A stretch of DNA of 64,000 nucleotides from Mytilus trossulus (GCF_036588685.1 NC_086382.1:71858001-71922000), one strand, 5' to 3'. Positions 4,205 to 58,105 are shown, numbered from the stretch's first letter. The notes: generated by a model from the letters alone, not told the origin. Numbers and translations are program-made.

Positions 4205-4480
4205 AATTCGCTACCTGTTTTTTTGGTGTATATAAGAATACCTAAGTTATAAATATAATGGAATTTGATGCGATTGTCATACAAGTGAGAGGTTAATCGA
4301 TATCAAACCAGGTTCAATCCACCAGTTTCTTCATTTGAAAATGCCAGTACCAAGTCAAGAATATATATGACAGTTGTTGTCCATTCGTTTGATGTGTTAT
4401 ATCATTTAATTTTGCCATTTCATTAGCGACTTTCCGTTTTTAATTTTCCTTGGAGTTAAGTATTTTTGTGACTAATTTTC
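4205..4480 (+). repeat. Dispersed repeat family C with decayed twister-like motif (4273-4374)
   Basis: GTGAGAGGT...CAATCCACC...GTACCAAGTC...TATGACAG; homologous to 13389-13640, 14880-15122, 29712-29985, 9241-9375 and 44975-45088. Confidence 0.7.
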
Positions 4481-8548: not shown

Positions 8549-10445
8549 AAATTAAAACGTCACTTAGGATTATCCTGGCAGGAAGATTAAAACGTCGTTT
8601 TGATCTTATGATACCAGGTTCATTTTTGACTTAAAATATCGTTTAAATCTATAAAAAAATGGCTTCTCTTTAACTGTAAATGACATCTTGATTCTATTAT
8701 ATAAGAGGCATCTTTGACGCTAAAATGTCATTTAGATTAATCATTACCGACGCATCTTGCACGTAACAGACGTCATTGTCGATTTCGAAAGAGAGCAGGC
8801 TATAATGCCCATGCAAGGGAGCACTCACACCCACAAAGTTGAAAATTGTTGATATAAGTTGTAATAACTAACTTCCCAATCTACTATCAATAAATATGTT
8901 AAAATCAAATTATGTAGATCTGTTATGACATGTAAACTACGTGCACTTAAACATGATACGTACGAATATTCTGAATTGTACATGTCAATGTCAAAACACT
9001 ATAAGATCTGTATAACAAACTTTTTACAACAAAAGTTGTTGAATTTTACACTTTCAAACCGTGTCAGGGTATTTTTACATCCTAACAATAAAAAAGACAA
9101 AAAGCATCGATTGAGAGTACAGAAATTGGTGGATGAAACTTGGACGCCATTCAATATAACATTAAAGTTCAACGACATCGACATTTAAGAGACTCTCTTG
9201 GTTTTAATAAAAACTGACAGGAGATTATTTTCGCTATAAGGTATGTACCAAGTCAGAAATATGACAGTTATTACCAATTCGTTTGATGTTTTTTGAGCTT
9301 TTGTACAATTTGATTAGGGATTTTCCGTTTTGATTTTTCCTCAAAGATCAGTATTTTTGTCATTTTACCTTTTTGCTATTAGGGATCAATAAATACGCAG
9401 CCACTTCGGAAATGGACATTTTAGTCTCTCAATGTTAGTTAACGTACTTCTGCAACACCGTGTTATCCGTGGTAAACTTTTATTCCACAGGCAAAATTCA
9501 AAATTATGTTTCTTTTTAAGACCACTTATATTCCACACATTTTTATTTTGCGCTACCTATTACTTTAATTGTGAGAATGAAGAGGTTTATCAAGCTGGAG
9601 AGACTCTGACCGTTATTAAAAGACACATGTCTGTGTTTTTGCAAATTATTGTTTACCTCATATCTTGAATCTCTTTATATATATTTACCTAATAGATTTT
9701 AACCAAACAAATTAATAAGTTTAAAGCGAAATAACTCAATTTAAATAGGTTTCTATATAGCAATATTTGGAATTATTTAAAATCTAAAAATCGCTAAAGA
9801 ATTTGACTTCTTGAAAATGGTATTTAAAAAGCCACAATTGGTGACAGAACAACAACTTAAAGGGGATTGGAATGTGGATGTCCCATGTCGAAGAAAACGT
9901 ATTATATACCGACATTCATTGCATTCATTGCCAACCCTTCATCGTTTATAAGCAGCAGCTCTGCTTAAATGTTATTCAGACATGAAACAAAAAAGCTTTT
10001 GTCTTCTAACTTAGTGATGTATACTCTATATACAGGTAAAATTGAGAATGGAAATGGAGAATATGTCAAAGAGACAACAACCCGACCATAGAAAAACAAC
10101 AACAGAAGGTCATCAATAGGTCTTCAATGTAGCGAGAAATTCCCGCACCCGGAGGCGTCCTTCAGCGGACCCCTAAACAAACATATAGTAGTTAAGTGAC
10201 AATGAATAAAATTGAGAATGGAAATGGGGAATGTGTCAAAGAGACAACAACCCGACCAAAATAAAAAAAACACAACAGCAGAAGGTCACCAACAGGTCTT
10301 CAATGTAGCGAGAAATTCCCGCACCCGGAGGCGTCCTTCAGCTGGCCCCTAAACAAATATATACTAGTTCAGTGATAATGAACGCCATACTTATTTCCAA
10401 ATTGTACACAAGAAACTAAAATTTAAATAATACAAGACTAACAAA

Positions 10446-10535
10446 GGCCAGAGGCTCCTGACTTGGGACAGGCGCAAAAATGCGGCGGGGTTAAACATGT
10501 TTGTGAGATCTCAACCCTCCCCCTATACCTCTAAC
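10446..10535 (-). ncRNA. Twister ribozyme, type-P5 permutation (intact core)
   Basis: Minus strand reads UAGAGGU-AUA-GGGG-G-A-GGG-[palindromes]-U^AA-CCCC-GC-CGCA(U4)UGCG-CCUG-U-CCC-AA-GU-CAGG-A-GCCUCUG; maps position by position onto the twister core (P2, T2, P3, P4, T1, catalytic G/A). Confidence 0.82.
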
Positions 10536-10619
10536 AGTGTAGAAAAGTAAATGAACGCCATATTAAATTCCAAATTGTACACACGAAAACTAAAATTAAA
10601 ATACTACAAGAATAACAAA

Positions 10620-10710
10620 GGCCAGAGGCTCATGACTTGGGACAGGCACATAATTGCGGCGGGGTTAAACATGTTTATGAGAACTCAACCCTCTCCCTAA
10701 ACCTCTAGCC
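10620..10710 (-). ncRNA. Twister ribozyme type-P5, second tandem copy (one mismatch each in P2 and P4)
   Basis: GGCUAGAGG/CCUCUGGCC P5, GAGGG, UAACCCCGCC, CCUGUCCCAAGUCAUG. Confidence 0.7.
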
Positions 10711-11512
10711 AATGTAGAAAAGTAAACGCATAACAATCGGCACATTAAAATTCAGTTCAAGAGAAGTCCGAGTCTGATGTCAGAAGATGTAACCAAAGAA
10801 AATAAACAAAATGACAATAATACATAAATAACAACAGACGACTAGGTGTTTATTAAACTATTAATACGGAAAGTTTTCACAGGCATAATCCAAAATTATC
10901 TTTTTTTAAATATATATTCTTCAATCTTTTTGCGCTCCATTTGCTTTAACTGTGTTGTGAACTTGTCCTGAATATATATGCATGATATATTTACTATTGC
11001 ACGCGCCAAAAAATAAAAAAAAAGTGTGTTTACTAAACTGAACAACTGTAAACTGTGTTGTTTTCATTTAGTTTTCCTCAATAAAATTAGAAAACTTATT
11101 CTAGATAAATGCAAATTAATATATATATAGTGTTGATAAAGTGTTGCTATATATATATAGTAGCTTTGGAGTGGTAGGAGAATAGACTTTAAAACATGAA
11201 CAAGAGATACAAGGCAATTGCCAAATGAAACAGTTACCACACAAAATGAAACAGCCATTCACCTACAACCTCCAAAACTCCAGGCAAGCACACTCCAATG
11301 AGCCAATCAAGGCGTTAAGAAGTGAAATATTGTAGGGTTCTAAGTTAGTTCAGCTGTATAACAATGCATATATATGTATAGTTATGCATTTCAATCAAGA
11401 ACTAAACAGTCTTACTCCTTTGCCTTATTGAAAACAACAACCCGAACATAGTGCACAAAATGTTTTTTTTTTACAAATACTGGTAAACCATAAGTGCAAT
11501 ATGTTTTCACAT

Positions 11513-13388: not shown

Positions 13389-13640
13389 TGAAAAAGTAAA
13401 ATCACAGAAATACTGAACTTAGAAGAAAATCAATTCGGAAAGTCCATAATCACATGGCAGAATCAAATAACAAAACGCATCAAAAACGAATGGACAAGAA
13501 CTGTCATATTCCTGACTTGGTACAGGAATTTTCAAATGTAGAAAATGGTGGATTAAACCTGGTTCTATAGCGCTAACCCTCTCACTTTAATGACAGTCTC
13601 ATCAAATTCCGTTATATATACATTGATTCGTTAAATAAAC
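13389..13640 (-). repeat. Repeat family C with twister-like motif (13500-13597), in the C1q-A intron
   Basis: ACUGUCAU/AUGACAGU P5, UAA-UCC-AC, CCUG-UACC-AA-GU-CAGG; absent from the paralogous segment near 10000-10020. Confidence 0.78.
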
Positions 13641-14302: not shown

Positions 14303-15262
14303 CGAGAGATAAGAATATGTGTCAATGTTCTGTTCTTATCAAAATATAGTCCTACTTATTAATAATATGTAATAATTCAGATTTTCAAAAACACTATCTG
14401 CGTATTAACATTCATATGAGTTGACAGAAATAAATGAACAAACCCATTTTGATATTCTTATTATACCCAGAAGCATGTCAAAGAACAGAAGAACACAATA
14501 TGTTCAACAGTGTTGGCTTTCCAACAGAAATTGTATAATACTTTTTTAAATAATTTGCATGTGTTTGGTTTAAATTTTCAAATTTTCCCCTTACATCTTG
14601 CAAAGAAAAGCATTGTACAGGATTAATCTCGGATCATATTTTCATAGTTCTGTAAAGATATGTTGAGGTGGGTCGAGACGACGAACATTTTAACATTTTT
14701 CAAATTTTCAGTTTGAGTTGTTTAAATTGATTATCGTCAAACAAAGCGGCATAACTCAGGTATAAATTGATAAAAACTGTATGACTATGTGTGACTACTT
14801 GTTTGTAAGAAAAAGAAAAAAATAAGTATATATTAAAGGCCTCATGATAACCTGCATTGGTTGTCTTTCTTTAAGGCAATTTGTGTGTCTTTGTTTCATT
14901 AGTGATTAAGATTATACTACAATGTTGCCATAGGTAACCCATTTGTTTACGAAGTTTTCCTTTCAAATCTGTTTGTTTTGCTTACAGATTAATTGTTGCG
15001 TTTTTAATGGTATTGAATGCGACTGTCATAGACGTGAGAGGCATAGCTAGCTATAAAACCAGATTGAATCCAATATTTTCGACATAAAGAAATGCATGTA
15101 CCAAGTCAGAAATAATACAGTTAACATGTTCTATTTGAAAAAGAGATTTCTATTTTTTTTAATTTTTTTTTGTGGTTTCAAATTTGTGTACCAATGTGAA
15201 TAAAAAATGTCAACAACTTCATTAGATGATGGAAATGCACTAACATGATTTTATCAAATTTT

Positions 15263-18055: not shown

Positions 18056-18504
18056 ATCTAATCAAATTGCAAAATCAAAAGCTCATACACATAAAACGAA
18101 TTGCTAACTCCTGACTTGGAAATTTTTAATGTATACTTTTTTGGATGAAACCTAGATTTATAGCTAGCTAAATCTCACACTTGTATAACATTTGCATAAA
18201 ACATTTCATTATATTGAAAACAACTTTTGAACCAAACAAGCAGTTATAAAAAGTAAAAGTTTGAAAAAAACAACAGTGTGTTAAAATCTCAAACACCAGG
18301 GTTTTCGATATCACAAACTAGTCAAAACATTTACTAAATTTTATCATCGGTATAAGGAATAATTATTAAACATAACTCAACATGCAAACATCTTATACGT
18401 TCAGGTATTTCACATCCAATCTTTTATGGTAATAATCTTTACAAAACACAAACATGTCAGTATTTACCCCAAAAGCTTACAAAACCTTTAAACAGACTTA
18501 TTAC

Positions 18505-19010
18505 ATAAAGGCAACAGTAGTATACCGCTGTTCAAACTCATAAATCTATGGACAAAAAAAATAAAATCGGGGTAACAAACTAAAACCGAGGGAAAGGCAT
18601 AAAATATAAGAGAACAACGGCACAACAATAAAATGTAACACACACAGAAACGGACAAAGAATCAGACAAAATCCCACGAGAATAACAAATATAACATCAA
18701 AACAAAAATACTTAATTTGGGATAGACAAGTACCGTGACATGTCTTATCGCAATATTAATTTACACTAAAAAATAAGAGAAAACAAACGACGCAACGTTA
18801 AAATGTAACACGCACAGAAACGAACAATAATATAATAATAGCCATATTCCTGACTTGGTACAGGACATTTTTAAAGAACAAAATGGTGGGCTGAACCTGG
18901 TTTTGTGGCATGCCAAACCACGCACTTTAATGGCAATGTTAAATATAACATTGAAATGACAACATAATATCACAGGACTACAATACAAATAAATAGGAGA
19001 ACGTATTAAG
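18505..19010 (-). repeat. Repeat family D with decayed twister-like motif (18841-18935)
   Basis: GCCAU/AUGGC P5, GGU..UACC T1, CCUG/CAGG P4; two core substitutions. Confidence 0.75.
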
Positions 19011-19079
19011 AAGGGATATAGTTACGATACTGTTGTCGGGTCATTAAAGATTGCATATTTTGGCTTTGGTATTGATTCA

Positions 19080-19735
19080 CTTATAGGGTCTTTGCATCGG
19101 AAGTAAACACATTTATTTAAAAAACAGTGGTTGGCATGACACGGGTTATTTTCTTTTCATATATTGTATGATTGTATGATACTAAACCCCTAACGAGAGG
19201 GATTTTGCCTGATATTCATATGATGAAGAAATAATCTATCCATTAGTTTAATTGAGGTCTGGAGCTGGTATGTCAGTTAACTGCTAGTATAGTCTGTTGT
19301 TATTATGTATTATTGTCATTTTATTTATTTTCTTTTGTTACATCTTCTGATATCGGACTCGAATTTCTCTTGAACCGAATTTTAATGTGCGTATTGATAT
19401 GCGTTTACTTTTCTACTTTGGGTAGAGGTATATGGGAGGGTTGAGATCTCATAAACATGTTTAACCCGGCCATAATTTTGCGCCTGTCCCAAGTCAAGAG
19501 CCTCTGGCCTTTTTGAGTCTTATATTTTATTTGCTTGTGTATAATTCGGAGTTAAGTATGACGTCCATTATCACTATACTAGTATACATATTTTTAAGGG
19601 GCCAGCTGAAGGACGCCTAAGGTTACGGGGGTTTCTCGCTACATTCAATACCCATTGGTGGCCGACGGCTGTTGTCTGCTCTATGGTCGGGTTGTTATCG
19701 TTATGTCACATTCCCCATTTCCTTTCTCAATTTTA
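19080..19735 (+). repeat. Repeat family A, long copy with twister-like motif (19420-19509)
   Basis: Homologous to 10206-10845 and 57480-58105; GAGGG..UUUAACCC..CCUGUCCCAAGUC. Confidence 0.8.
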
Positions 19736-29711: not shown

Positions 29712-29985
29712 AGAGAAATGATAAATATACCCAACTCCGAGAATAATTAAAAAGCAGACAGTCCGTAATCAAATGTCAATATCAAAAACTCAAAAACACC
29801 AAACGAATAAATAACGACTGTGATATTCCTGACTTGGTAAAAGCATTTTGTAGAAACTGGTGGATTCAGCCTGTTTTTTAACCTAAATAAACATCTAACT
29901 TGTATTACAGTCGCATACAATTCTATTATATTGACAACAATGTGTGAACAAAACAAACAAACATTATAGGTAAAAAAAATAAGTA
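29712..29985 (-). repeat. Repeat family C, decayed
   Basis: Homology to 13389-13640 including ACCAAGUCAGG. Confidence 0.7.
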
Positions 29986-32689: not shown

Positions 32690-33020
32690 TTACTGTGTTT
32701 CTGCCACGTAGGATGTCATTTTAGCAATATAATCTTTAATATTATAATGAAGCGGGAGGTTTGTCTAGCCATAATACCAGGTTCAACCCATCATTTTGTT
32801 CTTAAAATGGCCTGTACCAAGAATGATAGTTACCATCTAGTAGTTATTTTCTATTTATGTTGACGTTTGTTTTCGTTGCACTTCAGTGTTCCTGTTCTTC
32901 TTTTGTTTTCTTCTTATAGTTAATGTGTTTCCCTTGGATTTAGTTTCTAACCCGAATTTGTTTTGTACTGAATCGATACTTGATTTTTAAACACTGGTAT
33001 ACTACTGTTGCCCTTATTTA
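32690..33020 (+). repeat. Repeat family D, decayed, with partial twister-like motif (32745-32822)
   Basis: GCGGGAGGU...CAACCC...CCUGUACCAAG; ends tatactactgttgcc. Confidence 0.7.
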
Positions 33021-33837: not shown

Positions 33838-34166
33838 TAAAAAAAAAAGATGTGGTATGATTGTCACTGAGACAACTATCCACAACAGACCAAAATGACA
33901 CAAACATTAATAATTATAGGTCACCGTACGGCCTTCAACAATGAGCAAAGTCCACACCGCATATAGTCAGCTATATAAGGCCCCGATAAGACAATGTAAA
34001 ACAATTCAAACTAGAAAACTAACGGCCTTATTTTGTTAAAAAATGAACGAAAAACAAATATGTAACACATAAACAAACGACGACCACTGAATTACAGGCA
34101 CCTGACTTGGGACAGGCACATATATAAATAATGTGGCGGGGTTAAACATGTTAGCGTGATCCCAAC
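33838..34166 (-). repeat. Repeat family B (3' end of the PLE at 55183-56395), truncated inside the twister motif
   Basis: Reverse complement of 56075-56395; 3' half of the twister at 34083-34166. Confidence 0.8.
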
Positions 34167-36802
34167 ATTAAGACTTTTTTGCTGGTACAATGTAAATGTA
34201 TGGTTATTTATTATTATGTTGAAACTATCAGTGTTTTTCAAAAAATAGTACAACAAATACAATTTGACCTGGAATTCAAATGTATCAAGTTGACAGCGGT
34301 GAGCTACCTGCTAGTTATCTGAAAATATTTCATTAAACACGCCAAGGAAAAGGATAGTATACAAAAGTGCCTCCCATTAGGTTGTCAATGACGGTGATAG
34401 CAAGTTTTGTCATAAGGTGTGTGTCTGTTTTTGTAGCCCGGTTTGAATGTGTAGCAAGTTTGATATACATTGGATTCCTCATCCATCATTGATCACTAGA
34501 TCACTTCAAGAACCCGCTTGTAAAATTCTTGTTTAAGGGACTTACGTTTGTGTGTGAGATATAGACAATAAATAAGAAAACCACATATGGTCAGAATGTA
34601 GACGGTAATTCCAATACCCTGTGTGGAAAATTACAACGCTTTCTGGAAGACATAGAACGTCATATTGATGAACTGAAATGTCCATATAACATTATCATAT
34701 ATATAAAATAAAAATTTGAGAATGAAAATACATGTATGTATTTATCGACAAGCTTACACAATTTGAAAAGGCTTTAAAAAGTATTATCATTTTTGCAATT
34801 ACAAATAATATTTTTATCACAACACATTCCTTATAAGTATGGACAGAAATCTTACACTTACTTTTTAAAATATCAGATTTTGTTATCGATGAACAATGTC
34901 TTTAATTGTATTAAAGTAGGACATGTTCAGATTCTATTTAACTGTCAAGGTTATAAAATAATTATGAAGGGATGTAGTATTTAAGATAGACAATCTTTTG
35001 TTACAAGAACATGACATTGCTAAAATGAAGGTTTATAATTTTGTATTTTGTAACGATAATAATGATGTTCGTAATTCTGGACCTCAGATCTTTAAAACGA
35101 TGTGTCCGGTATGATTATAGAATCAAACTTCTTCAAATACTAGTAATTTTGATATTAGAAAATGAACAATTTCCTTTGCGTACCTTATATTTAACGTATT
35201 TTAGTATTATGTAATCAAATAATTGATTATACAGCATGTTTGCTCTTTTCTAATTTGACTTTGTTGAGTGTTTAATTGAATGGTCCAACACCAAACGTCA
35301 AACTACAAAAAAACAAATTACCAAGGGAATAGATAAATCACAATTTATTCATTATAGACACACAAACCAGGCTTTGAAGTGCTGAGTAAATAAAGATTTT
35401 AAGCAGCAAGTAATTACAAAAAATTTCTTATTCTTTATAGCTATGTAAAAACTGAGATAGAAATTAGTACGTTTTCTTATCACATAAGTGAGCACATAGT
35501 ATGATACATTATTGTCAACGAAAGGAGATCTTGTTACTCATGTTGTCACTTTGCAATGCAACTATTTCACAACTCATTTTTTTTTCTTCTTAAGTCTAAC
35601 AATTATCAAACTGCATTTAGATCTTTTAAAAAAAATAATACATCGGTAAACTGACAAATGCAGAGAAATATATTTTATAAGTTATAATTGCACAGGAAAT
35701 AAGAATTAAAAAAAATTCAAACACTTTTCGTTACGTGAATTTCGGTTTAAGAACTGTCTAAATATGGTTGCAAATTTTATCTATTCCTTGTACTATACTG
35801 GACCAGGTTGACTTTATATTTGTTATAACAAGCCCATTCTATATATTTTTGATACCCCCTCACTGACAGGTAATTAATTTTGTGAAGCATCTGACGTTGA
35901 TTTATGTATGGAAAAGAGGACATAATTATGAAAATCTAGTTTACCCCATGTTGGTTTACTGGATAACCTCGGTAAATATCACTTTAAAGAAATTAGTATT
36001 GAATTTGAAGCATGAATTCGTCGCTTGTTATAAAAACGTGTGGTGTGATGGGCAAATAATTACGAAATATTAAAAACGTTTGTTTTTTTATTTATTGCGC
36101 CTGATAAACCCATTATGAATTGAAATGTATTTATTTAATTGATGTTTAACTCAAGTTGCATACATCTTAGTCATCAGTAGGACTACAACTTATCTCATTG
36201 GTAGGTTTTGCACAGTGCATGGATCGGGATGTTGGAAATGGACATTTTACAATACAACAGCCTACTTATGGATCCCTCGTAAATTTTAGTAATGGGTCTT
36301 TACCGTGTATATAGCGTGGTACTATCCGTATCTTATATAAAAACCCTCGCATATGCCAAATAGCTACACGAATGACCCGTTCTTAGAATCGTTTGTTTTT
36401 ACCGCCGGTTAAATGGCACGCATATTTGAGTATATTGGGACTGACAACACCATTTTTATATGTCATGTTAGCATACTTTTATATAAAATGCATGACATTT
36501 GTTTTTATAAATCACGTTAAGAAAAAATAATTGCAGTTAGCCAAAATCAGAAAACAGAACTGTTGAGCAATCAACGTGTTTATCTGTGACTGACGACTTT
36601 TTGTAAGGAATATATTTGATATAGATATATATGATGTTAAATTTAGACCATTAAAATTGTCATAAAAAGTCATTATTAATTATGTTACCACCCACCTTTG
36701 ACAAAGAGCCCTTGATCTCTTACTTCGCATAATGAAAGGAAAATTTCAATTTTCACAATTGTTGCCCAAAGGTAAAGTAAGCAAACTGTTGCAGAAATTC
36801 TA

Positions 36803-48292: not shown

Positions 48293-49104
48293 AATAGTAG
48301 TTATTAAAGAAACCAGGATTATGATTTGATGTCCCAGACGCGCTTTTCGTCTAAACAAGACTCATCAGTGACGCTCAGATCAAAAAAGTTATAACCACTT
48401 CCACGTGTATTTTTTGTCTATCTGATGAGTTAACCCTTCTTCAACAGATTTTTATAGTTCGTTCTTATGTTGTACTGTTATACCACTGTCCCAGGTTAGG
48501 GGAGGGTTTTAACCACGCCACATTATTTATGTATGTGCCTGTCCCAAGTTAGGAGTCTGTAACTCAGTGGTTGTCGTTTGTTTATGTGTTACATATTTGT
48601 TTTTACATAAATAAGGCCGTTAGTTTTCTCGTTCGAATTGTTTTACATTGTCTTATCGAAGCCTTTTATAGCAGACTATGTGGTATGGGCTTTGCTCATT
48701 GCTGAAGGCCGTACGGTGACCGATAGTTGTTAATGTTTGTGTCTTTTTGGTCTTTTTGTCTCATTGACAATCATACCACATCTTCTTTTTTATATAACGC
48801 CAAAGAAGTACAAAGTTGTACAGCATTGAGGACCCACAATTCCAAATAATGTTGTGCCCAATAGTGCTTAGATAATCTTATTTCTTGGATTAAAAAAACC
48901 TTAGTTTTTCGAAATATTCAAAGTTTGTAAACAGGAAATTTATAAAAAAAAAATGACATACAATTGATATTCATGTCAACACCAAAGTGCTGACTACGGG
49001 ACTGTTGATACCCTCGGGGACGAAACGTCCACCACCAGTGGCTTCGAAACAGTGGTATAAATAGTTATTAAAGGTACAAGGATTATAACTTAATACGCTA
49101 GACG
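48293..49104 (-). mobile_element. Hammerhead retrozyme-like repeat (family H) interrupted by a family B insertion
   Basis: Terminal redundancy at 48296 and 49060; hammerhead at 48331-48375 (stem III mismatch). Confidence 0.8.
48395..48797 (+). repeat. Repeat family B nested in family H; twister-like motif at 48482-48571 lacking the palindromes
   Basis: Homologous to 55962-56395; TATAA on both sides. Confidence 0.8.
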
Positions 49105-55182: not shown

Positions 55183-56395
55183 AACGGGAAACTACACACT
55201 GAATTTTACGACAATAGAGACGATTTTTCGTTCCCTATTGTTAATTTTCCATTTTTAGAGGGTGATGTTTCTTTGGCACCATCTTACGTTGTTTATATTT
55301 CACAACTTGTTCGCTATGCCCGTGTCTGTCGTGACGGTTTTGATTTTAACGAACGCAACCTATGTATTACTGATAAATTATTAAACCAGGGATATCATTA
55401 CCATAAATTACTCTAAACCTTTACTACCTTTTTTCATAGATATAAAGAGTTGGTTTTGAAGTTTTGTTGTACCTGTAGAAAACTTATTTCTAACGGGATA
55501 TCATATCCTCATTTTCACGGCAATGTTGTTAACAGTGCCCGGAAATTTAGAAATGATTCATGTAAACTTGTCGCTCCTTTAAATAAACTAATTCTAAAAG
55601 GTTACCTATTCAACACTGTAATAAGGTCATTGAATATTGTTTTATTGGTATAAATATTGATTTTGTAATCCGTAGATTAAAAGCTAACTAAATATTACTG
55701 GTGTGTTATATACATATACATATTCTTGGATCCACAATCTGTCGATACCTGTAACTTGGCATTGCACAAGGTCATGTCTTTCTCTGGCTGTTTATGACGT
55801 CTTTACACTAAATCCATTGGATGTTGGAGGTGTACAGATTGATTGTTTAGTCTTAGATGCATGATTTTTTTATAAGTTGTTAGAGGCTTTGAACTAGCTG
55901 TCAGATTACTGCGAGTACTCTCAGATCTGTTAATGATGTTTTTTGCGTCGGGAAGTAACCGGCCACGTCCACTTTAATTTGTTGTCCATCTGATGAGGTA
56001 AGCCTTTTTTAACTGATTTTTATAGTTCGTTCTTATGTTGTACTGTTATACCACTGTCCCAGGTTAGGAGGAGGGTTGGGATCCCGCTAACATGTGTAAC
56101 ACCGCCACATTATTGATGTATGTGCCTGTCCCAAGTCAGGAGCCTGTAATTCAGTGGTTGTCGTTTGTTTATGTGTTGCATGTTTGTTTTTCGTTCTTTT
56201 TTTTTACATAGATAAGGTCGTTAGTTTTCTCGTTTTACATTGTCTTATCGGAGCCTTTTATAGATGACTATGCGGTATGGGCTTTGCTCATTGTTGAAGG
56301 CCGTACGGTGACCTATAGTTGATAATGTTTGTGTCATTTTGCTTTTTTGTGGATAGTTGTCTCATTGGCACTCATACCACATCTTCTGTTTTATA
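55183..56395 (+). mobile_element. 5'-truncated Penelope-like retroelement, family B (RT thumb/C-terminus + ~700-nt 3' region containing a twister motif)
   Basis: GKLHTEFYDNRDDFSFPIVNFPFL...YISQLVRYARVC...KLLNQGY; one in-frame stop; the 3' region matches the short family B repeats. Confidence 0.85.
56050..56158 (+). ncRNA. Twister ribozyme type-P5 in the PLE 3' region
   Basis: ACCACUG/CAGUGGU plus AGGU/GCCU P5; GGAG-G-A-GGG; U^AA-CACC-GC; CACAU/AUGUG P3; CCUG-UCCC-AA-GU-CAGG. Confidence 0.75.
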
Positions 56396-57479: not shown

Positions 57480-58105
57480 TGGCATAAGAAATAACCACTT
57501 CTTAACCAGTTGTTGGCATGATGCAGGTTATATTATTCACATATATATTATGATGGTAAGATACATACGCCATAAAAGAACGTATAGTGCTTGAACTTAA
57601 TATGATGACAATGTTATCTTTTAACCAGTTGAGTTGAAGTCTGGAGCTCGCATGTCAATAAGTTCCAGCAGTTTGTTGTTAATTTAAAAAAAAACAGTTT
57701 CATCTGTTGCCTAATCTGATATTGGACTCAGACTTCATATGACATTTATGAACTGATTTTAGCTGTTCATAGTTCTGTGTGTTTGTTTGTTCTTCATTGT
57801 TTAAATGTATATGGGACGATTGAGATCAAATTAAACATGAGTAACGTCGTTGCATTTGTGTGTCTGTCCCAAGTCAGGAGCCCCTGGCTTTTTATAGTCT
57901 TTTTTAGTTCATTTATTTGTTCATGAGTTTATTGTGACGTCCATTTTACCTGAACCAGTACACATTTGTGTTGTGAGGGAAACCGGACCCGCCTCCGAAT
58001 GCGGAATCTGCTCGCTATGTTGAAGACCAATTGATGGTCTTGAATTGTTTTCTGCTCGTTGGTCGGCTGTTGTTCATTTTACACATTGGCAATTTAATTC
58101 AAAAT
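57480..58105 (+). repeat. Repeat family A, old decayed copy
   Basis: Colinear with 19080-19735; retains CUGUCCCAAGUCAGGAGCC. Confidence 0.7.

Follow-up and report, generated by a model that had tools for sequence, protein, structure and literature searches.

The tail of a very abundant Naiad-type Penelope-like element (PLE), present as a dead copy in the 64-kb window analysed here (the whole stretch of DNA under study), carries an RNA with the predicted fold and the key bases of a twister self-cleaving ribozyme in type-P5 strand order. The most likely explanation is that this is a fossil copy of a twister-derived domain that self-cleaves in transcripts of active elements, although cleavage itself has not been shown; a probability of about 0.7 is assigned to this reading. 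The conserved fold taken alone is very probable, whereas the mechanism proposed below, in which two copies of the domain pair, is tentative. The predicted cut lies between the U and the A of UAA and would leave a 2′,3′-cyclic phosphate and a 5′-OH. An earlier note had proposed, from the sequence alone, a type-P5 twister with every element except P1 in an abundant retro-repeat. Its reading of the minus strand was exact, and its claims for the core letters, P2, P3, P4, P5, T1, T2, the missing P1 and the predicted cut site were each confirmed. The features of the motif and of related copies are listed in Table 1.

Table 1. Features of the twister-fold motif, its host insertion and related copies. 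Coordinates are those of the window unless a locus (L number, a fetched copy or contig) is given.
Feature	Coordinates	Strand	Remarks
Twister-fold motif, type-P5 strand order, family F1	10446-10535	-	Core identical to the commonest F1 sequence in the genome; custom model R1, 115.8 bits
P5 upstream strand	10533-10527	-	UAGAGGU
Linker	10526-10524	-	AUA
P2 3′ strand, then G-A-GGG	10515-10523	-	GGGG 10523-10520; GAGGG 10519-10515, with presumed general-base G10519 and T1 strand 10517-10515
22-nt stretch where P1 should be	10514-10493	-
Palindrome 1, in place of the P1 3′ strand	10504-10513	-	UGAGAUCUCA
Palindrome 2, ending at the cleavage-site U	10493-10502	-	AAACAUGUUU; inner 8 nt AACAUGUU
Predicted scissile bond	10492-10493	-	U10493^A10492; UAA 10493-10491
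AA, P2, T2 GC, P3 and P4 with its loop	10457-10491	-	P2 CCCC 10490-10487; GC 10486-10485; P3 CGCA(UUUU)UGCG 10484-10473; P4 CCUG 10472-10469; loop UCCCAAGU 10468-10461 (T1 CCC, T2 GU); CAGG 10460-10457
A	10456	-
P5 downstream strand	10455-10449	-	GCCUCUG; extendable to 10446
Young 5′-truncated F1 tail holding the motif	10207-10549	-	About 343 bp; no ORF
Left target-site duplication	10550-10555	-	TTCATT
Right target-site duplication	10201-10206	-	TTCATT
Older, related 5′-truncated tail split by the young insertion	10037-10845	-	Its own decayed motif at 10612-10726
176-bp 'B' unit that ends the element	10037-10382	-	…GGGGCCAGCUGAAGGACGCCUCCGGGUGCGGGAAUUUCUCGC…
F4 motif	56039-56159	+	Palindrome GGGAUCCC
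Reverse-transcriptase remnant	55183-55629	+	About 400 nt upstream of the F4 motif
Second F4 copy	34082-34202	-	Decayed
Third F4 copy	48471-48572	+	P1 region deleted
F1/F3-like copy	19404-19517	+	Decayed; RT remnants upstream at 18288-19103
Copy of the old family F3	57783-57897	+	Decayed
F5b copy	18830-18955	-	Loop UACCAAGU; palindrome UGGCAUGCCA
Sister copy of F5b	L032:270-399	-	Compensating GAGGU
F5a copy	13492-13614	-	P5 AUGACAG/CUGUCAU; palindrome UAGCGCUA
Further F5-type copy	4256-4378	+	Decayed; others at 15005-15130 (+), 29809-29927 (-) and 32723-32840 (+)
Full-length F2 copy	L037:302-3945	+	3644 bp
Full-length F2 copy followed by an F2b tail	L039:106-811; L058:61-766	-
Naiad ORFs with in-frame TGA, and SECIS_1-like hairpin	L031:900-4000 (-); L115:1100-4176 (-); L037:304-2928 (+); L037:3064-3121 (+)

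No Rfam family was detected at gathering score anywhere in the window. When only a 136-nt stretch was searched, Twister-P5 (RF02684) aligned end to end with every conserved core base matched and the P1 hairpin treated as a 21-nt gap, at 23.1 bits (cut-off 37.6) and E = 0.0034. With 1.2 kb supplied, the best match was twister-P1, also at 23.1 bits (cut-off 67.2), running from the UAA half of the upstream copy to the GAGGG half of this one across a 105-nt insert. These scores alone would not be significant over the window, in which the Twister-P5 E-value scales to about 1.6, and chance resemblance to the twister consensus inside an AT-rich repeat was considered. However, a plain twister-P5 descriptor (P2, T1, P4 and the fixed core letters) hit 4 sites in the window and none in 200 dinucleotide-preserving shuffles, and together with the comparative evidence below this makes chance resemblance very unlikely.

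The host repeat is a retroelement. At least 1042 first-look candidates for the 176-bp unit were found in the 1.3-Gb genome, the 40 best being 97-100% identical, and copies share one 3′ end (…CTCAATTTTA) but have scattered 5′ ends, the signature of a 5′-truncating retroelement. The longest copy fetched (L031) and a 92%-identical metagenome contig (L115) extend over 3.6 kb and encode an N-terminal GIY-YIG endonuclease, reading …VIYLLT-[TGA]-NKPGCGIQYVGETGRYLSKRTQEH… and preceded by C-x4-[TGA]-x2-C, followed by a KR-rich block, a CxC motif (CNC; TGA-D-C in F2), GPKY, PADKAANN (DKA) and a YLDD reverse transcriptase (RT). Apart from the RT, these are diagnostic features of the Naiad clade of PLEs given by Craig et al. 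(PMC8557442), as are the 5′ truncation, the insertion into or next to earlier copies and a body of 3.4-4.4 kb (full length 3644 bp in F2 and at least 3.6 kb in F1). Although the YLDD core and 3250 homologues were found, Pfam did not recognise the GIY-YIG domain and RVT_1 reached only E = 0.09, so that the assignment rests on motifs and the placing of the RT as PLE-type remains open. Every in-frame stop inside the Naiad ORFs is TGA, while the true terminator is TAA. The TGAs fall at cysteine positions (the C-x4-[TGA]-x2-C finger, the first Cys of the CCHH motif and the first C of CxC in F2), one more follows DKA...IIIV, and two copies that are 92% identical share them all. A SECIS_1-like hairpin (28.4 bits, cut-off 35, E 0.0038) lies about 140 nt after the F2 stop. 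This looks like selenoprotein-encoding Naiads, as Craig et al. reported for clams and spiders.

TRF reported two adjacent two-copy arrays of 174 and 176 bp at the locus, which together with the twister-P1 hit spanning two units raised the possibility of a tandem-repeat, retrozyme-like satellite with the ribozyme reading across units. This reading was rejected for this locus. BLAST against 29 other copies showed that a young tail, 99% identical to other copies, lies inside an older, related tail (89-92% identical) that continues across the insertion. The hexamer TTCATT flanks the young tail on both sides and occurs only once in uninterrupted copies, and other loci have a single unit. PLEs are known to insert into or beside earlier copies (PMC6765202). 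The motif is thus part of a dead insertion, and its function has to be judged from the family.

To test whether the fold is conserved, the F1 tail was compared with that of F2, a second, very abundant Naiad family whose RT is 67% identical to that of F1. Across roughly 660-1000 nt of 3′ UTR, the only stretch that BLAST aligned between the two was the 43 nt at the heart of the motif, which sits at the same distance from the 3′ end (about 290-300 nt). Read base by base, F2 differs from F1 as a real structure should: P2 changes from CCCC/GGGG to UCCC/GGGA, T1 from CCC with GAGGG to CCU with GAAGG, P3 from CGCA/UGCG to UGCAAA/UUUGCA, and P5 from GCCUCUG/UAGAGGU to UCUGA/UCAGA. Further families added to this pattern. 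F4, with an RT remnant 60% identical to the F1 RT by tblastn and at least 7641 first-look candidates in the genome, has P3 CACAU/AUGUG and P5 GCCUG/CAGGU, and an old F1-like copy has P3 CGAA/UUCG. F5 has the loop UACCAAGU with GAGGU, a different T1 pair changed on both sides (ACC/GGU), AC in place of GC opposite the loop GU, and P5 AUGGC/GCCAU or AUGACAG/CUGUCAU. One further family, F6 (L073), was too decayed to use. In total, up to 16 matches to the tail-motif model (13-16 sites), from at least four families, were found in the window, or roughly one per 4-5 kb, so Naiad tails make up a striking share of this region.

Consistent with these comparisons, in a MAFFT alignment of 13 copies 87.8% of cells were paired, against 79.7% in shuffles (0 of 500 as high) and 26-46% when partners were slid, with 8 pairs changed on both sides. 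In an alignment of 41 distinct copies made with model R1, with P5 added, 81.4% were paired against 70.8% in shuffles (0 of 500 as high) and 32-45% when slid, and 22 of 27 pairs were changed on both sides, including all 4 pairs of P2. Most of the sequences compared are dead copies from one genome, relatedness inflates the shuffle control, and the model-made alignment leans towards P2-P5. However, T1 and T2 were not part of model R1 and still hold up: T1 was 85-90% paired with two of its three pairs covarying (C-G to U-A in F2 and to A-U in F5), and T2 was 93-100% paired with one-sided changes only. P4 was 94-98% paired. The P2 register of F5 could not be settled from dead copies (2-3 pairs with a C.U mismatch or a bulged C), and F2 gave no twister match at E <= 10. 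An A-rich linker before the P2 3′ strand (AUA, AAAA, UA or UAAA) compares with GUAAA in the Sma twisters (PMC8501958).

The alternative that the fold is twister-derived but no longer cuts, being kept for its shape alone as a structured tail element (for instance a recognition or dimerisation domain for the RT, or a site for pairing two template RNAs), is considered unlikely but not excluded. In its favour, P1, the helix next to the cut site, is gone, the palindromes resemble dimer-initiation sites, and Naiads multiply well without a recognised ribozyme (PMC8557442). Genomic copies are also contiguous across the cut site, so that the RNA that was reverse-transcribed was either uncut or religated. 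Nevertheless, the bases needed only for catalysis and not for shape are kept in every well-preserved family, namely A+1 and A+2 of UAA (UAA or CAA in other families), the G-A of GAGGG and the AAG of the loop. Selection for shape alone would not obviously hold them.

No complementarity exists between the bases after GAGGG and those before UAA. Instead, two non-overlapping perfect palindromes lie between them in F1, F2, F2b (a sub-family of F2) and F4, with shuffling of the 21-22 nt segment giving p from under 0.0002 to 0.016 per family. Palindromes 1 and 2 are UGAGAUCUCA and AAACAUGUUU in F1, UGGGCCCA and AAACGUUU in F2, UGGAUCCA and (AACGUU) in F2b, and GGGAUCCC and AACAUGUU in F4, the last being read from the second F4 copy, since the first keeps only ACAUGU. 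In F5 variants palindrome 1 is UGGCAUGCCA, UAGCGCUA, UAGCUAGCUA or AUCGAU, and palindrome 2 is the imperfect AACC-A-GGUU. At least seven different palindromic words sit at position 1. Dead copies show single, uncompensated breaks, whereas differences between families are symmetric double changes, and within a family the two palindromes have matching lengths (10/10, 8/8 and 8/8). The odd-length F5 palindrome 2, with its central A, contains ACC and GGU, the same triplets that form T1 in that family, so alternative pairings that could switch the fold on or off are conceivable.

That the letters of the palindromes differ between families while their symmetry is kept suggests that two copies of the domain pair through them. 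In the model favoured here, which is an inference, palindrome 2 of one copy pairs with palindrome 2 of the other and supplies the helix that normally abuts the cut site, while the palindrome 1 duplex holds the borrowed strand next to GAGGG. Indeed, the inner part of palindrome 2 ends one base before the cleavage-site U, exactly where P1 ends in ordinary twisters (PMC8501958). RNAcofold favoured dimers by 6-16 kcal/mol, but this is not discriminating, as the calculation ignores pseudoknots and any palindrome would favour a dimer in it. A self-sufficient monomeric 'mini-twister' remains a live, though less likely, rival: twister retains inefficient cleavage without P1 (PMC8501958), and each palindrome could form a 2-3 bp hairpin with a 4-nt loop or have another unrelated role, such as a protein site on DNA or RNA pairing for template switching. 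Hairpins, however, do not need palindromic loops, and both the end point of palindrome 2 and the matched lengths fit a P1 surrogate better.

Cutting would then be favoured when two tails lie on one RNA, as in the partial tandems typical of these elements or in a read-through transcript, or when two RNAs meet. This would release unit-length RNA with ends that can be ligated into a circle, as proposed for retrozymes and PLEs. An arrangement of this kind was seen in L039 and L058, in which a full-length F2 copy is followed after about 55 nt by a 5′-truncated F2b tail (91% identical), placing two predicted ribozyme domains 590 nt apart on the same strand. A precedent is found in the minimal hammerheads in the pLTR of other PLEs (Cervera and de la Pena 2014; Lunse et al. 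2017, as summarised in PMC6765202), which have a minimal stem III with a palindromic loop and are thought to cleave as dimers, helped by the tandem layout. Those belong to a different ribozyme class and have one palindromic loop instead of two palindromes, and dimer action is inferred here, not measured.

Naiads, which dominate bivalve genomes, were reported to lack the hammerhead normally found in the pseudo-LTR of other PLEs, which was taken to suggest that the ribozyme is dispensable or parasitic (PMC8557442); twister is not mentioned in that paper. Consistent with that report, no hammerhead match at E <= 10 was found in the F1 tail region or the F2 3′ UTR, and the 'B' unit (CUGAAGGA…) does not fit CUGANGA. 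A conserved twister fold at the equivalent place would reverse the inference and would point to a required cutting step that any self-cleaving class can supply. It is possible, though doubtful at present, that Naiads did not lose their ribozyme but use a twister that is an obligate swapped dimer. In that case two unrelated ribozyme classes were shaped independently into dimer-dependent cutters in the same position of related retroelements, implying that PLE retrotransposition needs a cut that fires only when two tails are present and gives unit-length, possibly circular, RNA.

Twister and its P1, P3 and P5 permutations are established (Roth et al. 2014, as summarised in PMC6765202 and PMC10085705). 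Relative to type-P5 twisters (RF02684), the strand order, core letters and both pseudoknots are the same, but the P1 hairpin is replaced by two palindromes, some families carry GAAGG/CCU or GAGGU/ACC in T1, and the motif sits in an animal retroelement tail. The twister 'T-variants' at the 5′ end of Perere-3 (RTE-type) non-LTR retrotransposons of Schistosoma mansoni (PMC8501958), and the truncated twisters at RTE 5′ ends (PMC7761336), likewise have a weak or missing P1 and are tied to a retrotransposon. Those are type P1, lie at the 5′ end and take their P1 5′ strand from the target duplication. A twister in a PLE, a twister in the tail rather than at the 5′ end, and palindromes in place of P1 were not found in any paper that could be searched, in agreement with the impression of the earlier note that P5 twisters from such elements are undescribed. 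The motif escapes Rfam-based annotation, so thousands of copies per genome go unlabelled.

A search of the whole genome with Rfam Twister-P5 gave only three weak, decayed P1-type relics (…GCCGG-UCCCAAG-CCCGG-AUAAA…; C9:64010332, C2:74857349 and C7:26314545) that are unrelated to the Naiad tails. The genome therefore also holds ordinary twisters, perhaps at the 5′ ends of other retroelements. A metagenome scan with the P4-loop word returned mostly chance bacterial matches, together with P1-type twisters of other animals and only four P5-type contigs, of which two (L138 at 99.7% and L115 at 92% to this genome's families) add no independent species. Independent evidence from other species is thin. 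Rfam at gathering score found nothing on ten metagenome loci. The P1-type copies, including the contigs L077, L100, L126, L113 and L142 and other Ga0056xxx/Ga0126xxx contigs, some of them from worm-associated metagenomes, have the same CCUG-UCCCAAGU-CAGG hairpin, in some cases directly after (GT)n microsatellites. L113 scored 40.4 bits on twister-P1 with P1 mismatched. These copies resemble the truncated twisters reported at the 5′ ends of RTE-type elements.

Two further features of the host elements were noted. The 'B' unit is G+C-rich and conserved among F1 and F3 copies but matches no Rfam family. In addition, nine F2 copies start at the same base, where the reading frame begins after the GIY-YIG core (FKSLVYQHL...); this very abundant, young family seems to lack a complete endonuclease and may be mobilised in trans.
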